NCBI GenBank assembly: GCA_025201805.1
Contig: MU619431.1
Span: 1-34,667 of the forward strand
Reading direction: 5' to 3'
Source: Parasitella parasitica NRRL 2501
Taxonomy: Eukaryota > Fungi > Mucoromycota
Length of the DNA: 34,667 bases
Shown here piece after piece: positions 17,578 to 24,477 of the stretch. The position numbers and the translations under genes were made by a program. The stretch's first letter is position 1. Each line of letters opens with the position of its first letter. The notes below the pieces were generated by a model, which saw nothing but the letters and a program-made list of their open reading frames with translations, searched no databases and was not told the DNA's origin.

Positions 17578-20033
<2,456 letters not shown>

Positions 20034-20231: not shown

Positions 20232-22655
20232 ATGGCCGAGCAATTCAAGGTATACGAAAAGTTCAAAAACTACCCTTGGGAATCCGACAAGGTTTTCCAG
20301 CAAGGTCTCGAGAGTATTGTGAGCCAGCTTCCTGCAACTTTACCTGCAATAAAACAAGACAAGTTAGAGACAGATTTACTACAGGATGCTCGACTCTTGC
20401 AAGCCAAACATTTCTATTTTACCAGGTACATATATATGCTTATATATATATGTCTAATCAAGTACTTTTGACATTGGGAAACTCACAATTCATTAGGTTC
20501 CAGCAAAACTTTGATTTGAATGAGTATCTGGAATACGAGGCAGAGAAAATTGATAGAAAATTGAATGAGCAACAACAGGAAGAATTATTCAATCAAATCC
20601 AGGCTTATGACTATGATGGCGATGTTGACTATACCAACGGTTTACCTAACATTATTCATGGTTGGCTCGACCAGCAATCACAAACTGGGTTATGGAACAA
20701 GGAGAGATTGGAAATGGAGTTTTTGAAAGCAAAAGCATTTTACTACAATGCGTAAGTCTGGATTCATAAAATGCCGTATAAAAAACAAAGCAACAAACTG
20801 ATAATTAGTGCGCATATAGTCGTATTAAAAGCTTTGACATAGTCGCATTTTTCAATTGGAAATCCAAGAAGGATGAAGCAAATGCGCCTGTGTGTCCGTT
20901 TGCCAATCTATGGCAAAACCAATACAAAAGTAAATAATCTTGGATATATTGTATGGGTCTATATGCTGACATCTCGAATATAGCTGGGCCTGTAGACCAA
21001 GTAAATGGCTCTTCTTTTGTTGTATTTGATAAACCAAAGAGTAAAGGAGCTGGGACATTGACATTGTCATCACCCAAAAGCAAAAATGTCTACTCGGTTG
21101 GCCGACTAGCGGAATATGCTTCTGCCCTTCAAGATGGCCAAAGCGATGAGCAGGTAACATCTTTTTTCATTACGGCAACGGTAGCGGACAGAAGTAGTCC
21201 TTTCGACAAGGCTGAGCGTATCGAGACAAGAGATACAAAAGTGATTAGTTCTGGCTTGGCTTATGACAAAACCTCGAGCTTGGCGTCTGGCTCTAATGAT
21301 TTACGACAGGTTTCGCTACAAAAATTGGCCAGCAGCTATTACGACCTTGTGCGCTACATAATAGCACAGCGCAAAGATCCTAAACTGGCTGTAACCTTTT
21401 CAAATGGCCAAATACCTCTGAATGCCGTATATTTAACACTGGGTCTGGGCTTTATGCGTGTGATAACTGAACACACACTGCTTGATTTCACATTGACGCT
21501 ATCAGACGCACCTATACCTCCTCTGTTACTGCTTTCCATGGCTCGTGCGCGTACGTCCACCGTGGCAAAACCCTTACCTAAAGGCCTTGAACTGTACCTT
21601 GCTTTAACTGCTCCAGAGTATGCCAAACTAAGAGGCCCTGAAATTCTGCGTCTAGGCTTAGCAGATGTTTTTGTTCCAGAAGCTAAATTGAGCGATGCAT
21701 TTGAAACCGCTAAGAAAATGGCCGTTTGCCCTGCTCCCGATACGAACGCAGCCGTTCAGTTGGCTTTGGCCATCCATCATACTTATGCTGGTCCAAACCG
21801 TTTGCAAGTCTGGGAGGATCAAATTGAGCAAGTGTTTGGGGTAAGTGTCTGGCTTTGAAAGGCTAGTATATGGCTTATGTGCATATGTACTCAACGATTG
21901 TTTAATCATGTACATCTAAGGCTGCTGAATCATTCAGTAATCTCAAGGATCGTTTAGAGGCAGTAGATAGTATCTGGAGTAGAACCATCTTGAACCACTG
22001 GAATACTCTTCCTACTTCACTGCTCAATGTTGTATTCAAAGCGGTTGACATGTGTAAGGATAAACCACCATTTGATGTTTTAGCACTTGAACAAAAGCTC
22101 AATGCAAAATGGCGTCAAACTGAGGATTATAACGAATGGTCAAGGTCGAAAAATGAATGGATCTCTGACGAAAGTCAAATCGATGCCATTGTTGATTCTT
22201 ACTTCCAGGATCTCAAGCTTCCGGCTATTTCTGACGAGGCTGCTGCTGTTTATGAAGCGCCTCAAGAAACCGAACAAGAGTTGGCTCCGGCTATGTGTCC
22301 TGTAACGGGACAGATATCCTCGGCTACTACCGCATGTCCTGCATTTGCTGCTGCTGCTGCTGTGTGCCCCGTAACTGGGCAGACATCGTCTAGTACTGCT
22401 ACGTGTCCTGTTTCCACAACTGATACTAATACAAATGTCTCTGCTGCTGCTGCATGTCCAGTTACAGGTAAACGTGCTGATAACTCTGCAAATGATGAAA
22501 GTAAATGCCCTTTTAGCGACTCTCATACTGCTGAGAAACCTGAAAAGATGTTATCTGCTGGCGGATGCCCGTTTTCAAAAGACCAGCAAATAGAATTGAT
22601 GAGCAAAGTTTCTTGTCCTGATACTGGAACTAGGAGACACTCTCTCGTTAATTAA
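20232..22655 (+). CDS. Uncharacterised multidomain protein: two small helical repeats + degenerate HIBCH/crotonase (ECH_2-like) fold + Cys-Pro repeat tail
   Basis: Exons 20232-20425, 20497-20751, 20820-20929, 20984-21840 and 21921-22655. All introns are GT-AG and every junction preserves the frame. Domain reading is by motif comparison (see findings). Confidence 0.8.
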
Positions 22656-22874: not shown

Positions 22875-24477
22875 TTAAGGAGCAATCAAGACACGGACAG
22901 TGTTGGTATTACCAAGACCACCCTTCCAGCCTTGGACAATGACAACAGGTTCGTTGGACTTAACAAGGCCAGCCTCTTTACCTTGTTGGATACCCCACTT
23001 GATGCGAGACTCGACATCTTCGTCCCACTTGGTGGCAACATCACCCTTGTAAACAAATGGGAAGACACCACGGTGGAGATGAGATTGACGAGCAGTTTGT
23101 TCATCACGAGTGACAAGAATAATAGGTTGAGATGGTCTGTATTTGGATGCAAGACGAGCAGAGTGGCCAGATTTAGAGAGGACAATGATGGCAGATGCGT
23201 TATTCTCTTGAGCACATGCTACACTGCTCATAGCAATGGTTTCTGTAGTATCAGTGGGCCATGAGGTCAAGCTACGGATTTGGTTGAAGAGGGGGTTATA
23301 GCAGATGACAGATTCAGCAAGTTCACAAGTGGAGGCCATGGTAGAAACAGCCTCAAGAGGATAATCACCCTTGGCGGTTTCACCAGAAAGCATGACGAGA
23401 TCAGCACCATCGAGAACAGCATTGGCAACATCAGAGACTTCAGCACGAGTAGGACGAGGGTTAAAGGTCATGGATTCGAGCATTTGAGTAGCGCAGGCAA
23501 CAGGCTTGCCGACCAAGTTACACTTGGCAATCATCATCTTTTGGGCAATGAAGACACGTTCGCAAGGAATTTCAATACCCATATCGCCACGAGCAATCAT
23601 AACACCGTCAGTCTCGGCAAGGATTTCGTCAAAGTTCTGGATACCCTGATGGTTCTCGATCTTACAGATGATTTTGACATTCTTTCCTTTGTCGCCGAGA
23701 ACGCGACGGATATCCTTGACGTCCTGGGCACGACGAATGAAAGAGGCAAAGATCATGTCGACACCATTCTCAACACCAAAGCGAAGATCGTTCTTGTCTT
23801 TTTCGGAAAGAGCGGGAAGATCGACGGCAGTCTTGGGAAGGTTAACGCCCTTCTTGGAGCAGATCTTTCCGTTGTTTTGAGCCTCAACACGGACGAAATC
23901 ATCACCCTTGGAGAGAACCTTGAAAGAGAGGACACCGTCATCAACATAAATGTTCTTGCCAACTTCAATAACCTTGGGCAAGTTCTTGTAATCAACATAC
24001 ATGTTGTCACCATCACAAGCATTAGCGTACTTGTCGTTGGTGGTGATGTTCATTTGATGGCCCTTCTTGATGGGGACTTCAGTGTCGTTGAGCATCAAAC
24101 CAGTACGGATCTCAGGACCCTTGGTATCCAAAGCAATGGCAATGACTTTATCAGGGCGTGCTAATAGGTAGAGGTTTGATGGTTAGTTGTCTGTGAAAAT
24201 CACGCTTCACTTGTACATTACCAGCAGCAGCAGCGCGAGCGTTATCGAGGACAGATTTGTGGTACTCATAATCACCATGAGAAAAGTTCATACGGACAAT
24301 ATTCATACCAGCATCAATCAATGCAGTGAGCTTCTCAACAGGCTTGGTCTTGGGACCAATGGTACAGATGATGGAAGTCTTGCGGGTGGCCTTGGGTTGG
24401 ACATCAACATCCATGCTGGAGATCCATTGCATGGGGAATTGAACTTGAGATTGAGCTTGCTTGTTATCGGTAAACAT
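22875..24477 (-). CDS. PYK1: Pyruvate kinase
   Basis: One intron, 24161-24221. Motifs: [86 protein letters not shown]. Strong codon bias typical of a highly expressed gene. Confidence 0.99.

Follow-up and report, generated by a model that had tools for sequence, protein, structure and literature searches.

A zygomycete protein family combining tandem HTH_76 domains, a HIBCH-like fold without its catalytic residues and a Cys-Pro-rich tail

Our analysis concerns a 34,667-nt stretch of contig MU619431.1 of the fungus Parasitella parasitica NRRL 2501 (assembly GCA_025201805.1), hereafter the window, in which positions 20232-22655 of the + strand form one five-exon gene encoding one protein. This protein belongs to a family found in Mucoromycota and Zoopagomycota (the zygomycete fungi), whose members consist of a tandem pair of Pfam HTH_76 domains, a flexible linker carrying the motif CP[FY]A[HN]LW, a complete fold of the 3-hydroxyisobutyryl-CoA hydrolase type (HIBCH/ECH_2) and a disordered tail with 1-8 motifs of the CPVTG type. 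The parts are thus of known kinds (a crotonase-fold pseudoenzyme, HTH_76 and motifs resembling heme regulatory motifs, HRMs), joined in a combination that has not been described.

The five exons sum to 2151 nt, that is 716 codons plus the stop, and none of them contains an in-frame stop. The introns measure 71, 68, 54 and 80 nt, all have GT..AG borders (donors GTACAT, GTAAGT, GTAAAT and GTAAGT, from 1 to 4) and join exons whose frames agree. Exons were translated and searched singly, while the whole-protein analyses were run on natural orthologues, chiefly P0002 from Helicostylum pulchrum. Exons 1 to 5 map to P0002 residues 3-53, 55-133, 136-171, 173-441 and 442-635, with one split-codon residue left out at each of the phase-1 and phase-2 junctions (1-3) and none at the phase-0 junction 4, and the mapping was likewise seamless on three further orthologues. 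In support of this model, a profile of the N-terminal 170-200 residues of the orthologues, run in a six-frame search of the P. parasitica genome, matched exons 1, 2 and 3 colinearly and nothing else. An earlier note made from the letters of the window had proposed that four open reading frames (ORFs) and one unlisted exon splice into a single frame of ~715 aa; the gene model bears this out, and every peptide string quoted there was found in the exon translations.

Moreover, in a related Mucorales species, represented by a Logan contig (L016; exon 4 identity 75%), exons 3-5 form a single ORF of 506 codons. Because these exons are uninterrupted in L016, one protein must contain the repeat together with the linker, the crotonase part and the tail. 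Note that L016 retains intron 2 and has neither intron 3 nor intron 4, so that the presence of introns differs between close species.

Table 1. Coordinates of the exons and motifs of the five-exon gene within the window
Feature	Position	Strand	Remark
Exon 1	20232..20425	+	Start codon onward; bulk of HTH_76 repeat 1; ends in phase 2, then GTACAT donor
Exon 2	20497..20751	+	Last helix of repeat 1, acidic linker, bulk of HTH_76 repeat 2; ends in phase 2, then GTAAGT donor
Exon 3	20820..20929	+	Final helix of repeat 2, plus the linker whose Cys-Pro motif is invariant in the family
C-P-F-A-N-L-W	20893..20913	+	Linker, low confidence in the structure prediction (pLDDT)
Exon 4	20984..21840	+	N-terminal and core part of the HIBCH/ECH_2-like crotonase fold
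N-G-Q-I-P-L-N-A	21403..21426	+	In place of the HIBCH oxyanion loop G-x-x-M-G-G-G (G-I-T-M-G-G-G in the profile alignment)
L-D-F-T-L-T-L-S-D-A-P-I-P-P	21481..21522	+	In place of F-A-M-P-E-T-A-I-G-L-F-P-D (profile alignment)
C-P-A-P-D-T	21727..21744	+	Internal Cys-Pro motif, loop between two core helices; family consensus CPxP[HD]T
Exon 5	21921..22655	+	Last exon, runs to the stop codon
Exon 5, first part	21921..22211	+	Helical domain at the C-terminal end of the HIBCH fold
Eight Cys-Pro motifs: CPVTGQ, CPAF, CPVTGQ, CPVS, CPVTGK, CPFS, CPFS, CPDTG	22296..22631	+	Predicted disordered tail
Stop codon TAA	22653..22655	+	End of exon 5

An exhaustive HMMER search with exon 4 returned no more than 38 cluster representatives, of which 24 had E < 1e-30, and most were proteins of 590-780 residues in which the alignment began near residue 195. 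Members occur in the Mucorales (Helicostylum, Mycotypha, Radiomyces, Halteromyces, Phycomyces and Sporodiniella), in other Mucoromycota (Umbelopsis, Bifiguratus, Calcarisporiella and, from the Mortierellomycotina, Lunasporangiospora) and in the Zoopagomycota (Ramicandelaber, Coemansia, Mycoemilia, Spiromyces, Thamnocephalis and Basidiobolus). The survey of Mucoromycota orthologues that had been suggested as a check found both the architecture and the loss of catalytic residues conserved, and it reached into a second phylum. All the named members are annotated as 'hypothetical' or 'uncharacterized', and the automatic UniRef names are '3-hydroxyisobutyryl-CoA hydrolase' or 'PEX14-like helix-turn-helix domain-containing protein'. 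A literature search on HTH_76, PF25871, 'PEX14-like helix-turn-helix' and HIBCH pseudoenzymes gave no relevant paper. The supposition that no protein of this architecture had been described therefore holds for the searched literature, although orthologues were already deposited as hypothetical proteins.

The N-terminal repeats are two tandem copies of HTH_76 (PF25871), the 'region X' of fungal PEX39. We built a repeat profile from both repeats of 17 orthologues, with the window's own exons kept outside the alignment; its consensus reads F..F..Yd...D..FQ.GL..I, then a variable loop, then LKAKaFYys......DL..YL.W. The two repeats of the window matched this profile at E 2.6e-15 and 6.5e-18, and BLAST matches from one repeat to the other reached ~2e-4, in agreement with the two copies seen beforehand. 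PF25871 was precomputed on all 14 short database proteins that the repeat profile matched, among them fragments from close orthologues that correspond to exons 1 and 2; the assignment to HTH_76 rests on this precomputed annotation of the profile matches. The AlphaFold2 (AF2) model of an orthologue N-domain is all-helical, with a predicted local distance difference test score (pLDDT) of 91.6, and its best fold match in the ESM Atlas is a Mucoromycota cluster with KPWE_dom and HTH_76 (74 residues, root-mean-square deviation 1.9, template modelling (TM) score 0.61, by hit). Solved structures offered no convincing relative of HTH_76: Foldseek against the PDB gave no match at E <= 1, VIA-align wide gave a best Z of 5.2 (noise level for a helical protein), and the N-domain profile found nothing below E 0.1 among PDB sequences. 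The Atlas feature search gave no usable match, and the whole N-domain profile run against proteins of 95-301 residues, a search limited by its word index, found orthologue fragments only.

PEX39 (Yjr012c/C6ORF226), a recently described peroxin that acts in peroxisomal import, is defined by KPWE_dom (DUF5572). The PEX39 of P. parasitica itself lies on another contig (C60; L004:930-1627, G000:C60, ~93593-94290, + strand), in a gene of several short exons that encodes an HTH_76 domain followed by a KPWE_dom ending in K-P-W-E. Our repeat profile matched ORF pieces just upstream of its KPWE exons colinearly, at E 1.8e-7, 1.2e-4 and 0.015. Moreover, this gene has a phase 2 intron right after the F-Y-Y-x-x segment; introns 1 and 2 of our five-exon gene interrupt repeats 1 and 2 at that same point and in that same phase. 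Sequence profile, predicted structure and the placing and phase of the intron all show that the two proteins share one helical domain, and the kinship to DUF5572/Pex39-related proteins proposed in the earlier note stands on PF25871, the Atlas fold, the C60 match and the common intron. They differ in that ours lacks KPWE_dom and the conserved (R/K)PWE motif, and in that it has two HTH_76 copies in tandem, joined to a crotonase fold. KPWE_dom matched no exon and no orthologue, and the N-terminal Y-P-W-E lies within HTH_76 and varies among orthologues (YPWD, YDWK, YNWL). The protein is consequently not a PEX39: it has neither the defining domain nor a conserved (R/K)PWE motif, and the true PEX39 is encoded elsewhere.

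In all searches run, HTH_76 was confined to the studied family and to PEX39-type proteins, and profile searches detected no further HTH_76 gene in the P. parasitica genome. The family thus provides a second, independent context for this domain, and its partner here could explain region X of PEX39. A relation of HTH_76 to Pex14_N (PF04695) was considered and rejected, hhalign against the genome's Pex14_N giving a probability of 0.3%, with no Pfam match. The Pex14_N domain itself occurs above the Pfam cut-off at three separate loci of the genome (G000:C14:157515-157649, G000:C141:5111-5245 and G000:C36:142395-142529), suggesting the presence of several PEX14-type genes.

The middle of the protein is a genuine and complete HIBCH/ECH_2 crotonase fold. 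Full-length orthologues score 40-71 bits against ECH_2 (PF16113), above the cut-off of 27.2. Exon 4 alone scores 24.4 bits (E 2.5e-5), just under the cut-off, because the domain is split by an intron and continues into exon 5; in the orthologues the match spans the exon 4/5 junction. With human HIBCH (3BPT) the family profile aligned across chain residues 18-353, at E 1.6e-16. Throughout the HIBCH-like core the AF2 model of P0002 reaches pLDDT > 90, and Foldseek gave TM scores of 0.71-0.77 to 4HDT and 3BPT; plant mS47 was also matched (TM 0.7-0.77). The likeness to HIBCH covers the whole fold, C-terminal helical domain included, and is colinear over ~340 residues, whereas the studied protein differs in lacking the catalytic Glu, the Asp and the glycine loops, and in having the additional HTH_76 pair and Cys-Pro tail.

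In HIBCH the catalytic pair consists of a nucleophile Glu and an Asp eight residues later (A-M-P-E...F-P-D), and glycine-rich segments supply the oxyanion hole. In the profile alignment to HIBCH, the Glu position is occupied by Leu and the Asp position by Pro. No family member, including those of the Mortierellomycotina and Zoopagomycota, has an acidic residue at either position, and the glycine-rich loops (A-G-G-D and G-x-x-M-G-G-G) are replaced family-wide. Since the catalytic residues are lost in every member, the inactivation is ancestral to the family. With the Glu, the Asp and the oxyanion loops all replaced, the known mechanism of 3-hydroxyisobutyryl-CoA hydrolysis is therefore excluded; as judged from its sequence, the protein cannot use it. 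Canonical ECH_2 genes are present elsewhere in the P. parasitica genome.

The Pfam scores, the 3BPT match, Foldseek and the family-wide alignment thus uphold the earlier reading of this region as an HIBCH layout that has lost catalysis. The equivalents proposed for the oxyanion loop (NGQIPLNA) and for the A-M-P-E-x-x-I-G-x-F-P-D positions also agree with the profile alignment, but SSGLA, put forward as the counterpart of C-A-G-G-D, does not: I-E-T-R-D stands there, and SSGLA lies a few residues downstream. The family is a clear case of an HIBCH fold without its catalytic residues retained across more than one fungal phylum. Recruitment of this fold to a structural, non-metabolic role is seen in the mitochondrial ribosomal protein mS47 (5MRC, 6YW5, 9EVS; TM 0.58-0.77). 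The studied protein differs from mS47 in lacking a presequence and in its accessory domains, and we rejected its identification as mS47: the family profile matched mS47 chains more weakly (E 1e-6 to 1e-8) than HIBCH proper, and the N-terminus is acidic.

The third component is a set of Cys-Pro (CP) motifs. The studied gene has ten, eight in the tail and two upstream, and three CP sites are conserved family-wide: one in the linker, one in a core loop and at least one CPVTG or CPF in the tail. The linker consensus is CP[FY]A[HN]LWQNKG, in which C, P and W are invariant in the family. Both the linker and the tail have pLDDT < 50 in the AF2 model of P0002 and are predicted to be disordered. The eight CP motifs noticed at the outset were counted in exon 5, and the array is non-random and conserved. 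All eight tail Cys of the studied gene directly precede Pro, as do 79 of the 91 Cys in 21 family tails, compared with a Pro frequency of ~7% of residues. The tail consensus is A-V-C-P-V-T-G-Q, and of the 76 CP motifs counted in the tails of the family, 71 have V, F, I or M at residue +2.

In Mucorales the tail motif is expanded to 3-8 copies, and few conserved Cys-Pro arrays seen in fungal proteins are as dense as that of the studied gene. Two ideas about the array were rejected. It did not arise by recent tandem duplication of the DNA and forms no tandem repeat at that level, Tandem Repeats Finder having found only a short TGC run, and CPVTGQ is not a common module of the genome, occurring in the studied gene only. 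Just before the first CPVTGQ (22230-22290, exon 5), most Mucorales orthologues have a short conserved motif, (V/I)-Y-(E/K/D)-A-P-x-E, within an acidic stretch; it may serve for docking as a linear motif.

The HRMs of heme oxygenase-2, Hap1 and heme lyase have V or F after the CP. As in the HRM proteins (Hap1, heme oxygenase-2, heme lyase, BACH1/2, ALAS), the family has multiple Cys-Pro-hydrophobic motifs in flexible or disordered segments, and its ancestral linker motif, CPYAH, fits CP-x-x-H. The resemblance is one of motif without homology, and the studied family differs in keeping four further residues, V-T-G-Q. Among transient heme ligands, the most frequent are CP motifs located in flexible loops, and HRMs are typically recognised by a CP with V or F behind it in a flexible segment (PMC10377097).

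As regards localisation, neither the window's exons nor 19 orthologues have a C-terminus resembling the type 1 peroxisomal targeting signal (PTS1), a PTS2 pattern or a basic N-terminus, and the first 30 residues carry a net charge of -1 to -6 across the family. The absence of PTS1 and of a KPWE motif was thus correctly observed before. By default, we presume the protein to be cytosolic.

We tentatively favour the reading that the protein is a cytosolic, non-catalytic scaffold with HTH_76 docking and with CP sites that respond to heme or redox state. The core of such a pseudoenzyme scaffold would be the crotonase fold, there to oligomerise or to bind a ligand, and the two HTH_76 modules would dock a partner common with region X of PEX39. 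Reversible ligand binding would fall to the exposed Cys-Pro thiolates, at the three conserved sites and in the expandable tail array. By analogy with the CP-V and CP-F motifs of HRM proteins, ferric heme would be the most likely ligand, and its binding at the CP sites could make the interactions of the protein respond to heme or redox state. We put forward heme or redox sensing as a hypothesis drawn from this analogy. The dense array makes it possible to test directly, by simple spectroscopy, whether zygomycetes, among them the agents of mucormycosis, sense heme or thiols.

Several points count against this preference. Crotonase-fold enzymes often gain new chemistry with other residues. The His of the linker motif in early-branching members (CPYAH) is Asn in the studied gene. 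The conserved V-T-G-Q exceeds what a classical HRM needs, which hints at recognition by a protein or an enzyme over simple heme ligation. Finally, the role of HTH_76 is unexplained even in PEX39 (PMC12339391).

The protein could instead be a neofunctionalised enzyme that kept the acyl-CoA pocket but uses other residues for another reaction, in which Cys of the tail or linker might be acyl acceptors or redox partners. From the sequences we consider this rather unlikely. The new sequences of the active-site loops are well conserved in Mucorales (IET.DTK..SSGLAY and SHAPIPPLLLL), the AGGD segment keeps its Asp and RV.TE its Glu, and the crotonase superfamily is known for its mechanistic plasticity. 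However, the replaced loops contain no invariant acidic or basic residue: the His of SHAP is Asp in the studied gene, Tyr in the orthologue P0013 and Asn in Umbelopsis, and the loops of the Mortierellomycotina members are quite different. The loss of the glycine-rich segments that form the HIBCH oxyanion hole also speaks against an enzyme.

Another possibility could be that the protein is an accessory factor of peroxisomal import linked to PTS2 and PEX7, in which the HTH_76 pair engages the PEX39 machinery and the HIBCH-like body acts as an adaptor or cargo mimic. The restriction of HTH_76 to this family and PEX39-type proteins, with no further HTH_76 gene detected in the genome, is in its favour, and HIBCH and other crotonases are peroxisomal in some lineages. 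Nevertheless, we regard this role as unlikely: the KPWE domain, PTS1 and PTS2 are all absent, a true PEX39 is encoded elsewhere, region X has no known role in PEX39 itself, and HTH_76 has no detectable similarity to Pex14_N.

It is likewise improbable that, instead of heme, a metal or an Fe-S cluster is bound at the Cys-Pro sites, or that these serve as a thiol redox relay or buffer. The many exposed single Cys in a disordered acidic tail would suit such a function. However, single Cys 10-15 residues apart, without CxxC or CxC, are atypical of tight metal sites, and the CP followed by V or F matches the HRMs named above.

Less probable still is a more specific proposal, in which the protein would be a regulator gated by heme or redox state and would share the HTH_76 partner with PEX39, either in competition or in cooperation. 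If true, PTS2 import or another PEX39-linked step would be coupled to heme or acyl-CoA status in early-diverging fungi, and the function of region X of PEX39 would be revealed. Finally, it is scarcely credible that the gene is a pseudogene or an artefact of the gene model, made of a small HTH_76 gene and a separate HIBCH-like gene, since exon 3 holds the last helix of repeat 2 together with the linker and in L016 shares an ORF with the crotonase part and the tail, the full architecture is common to >20 orthologues from two phyla, and all exons are free of in-frame stops.

On both sides the gene has close neighbours. The C-terminal exons of an SNF1/AMPK-type kinase, with matches to AdenylateSensor and KA1, lie at 19081-20033 on the + strand and end ~200 nt upstream of the gene. 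Downstream, at 22875-24131 on the - strand, is a convergent pyruvate kinase gene (PK barrel and PK_C domains), the two stop codons being ~220 nt apart.

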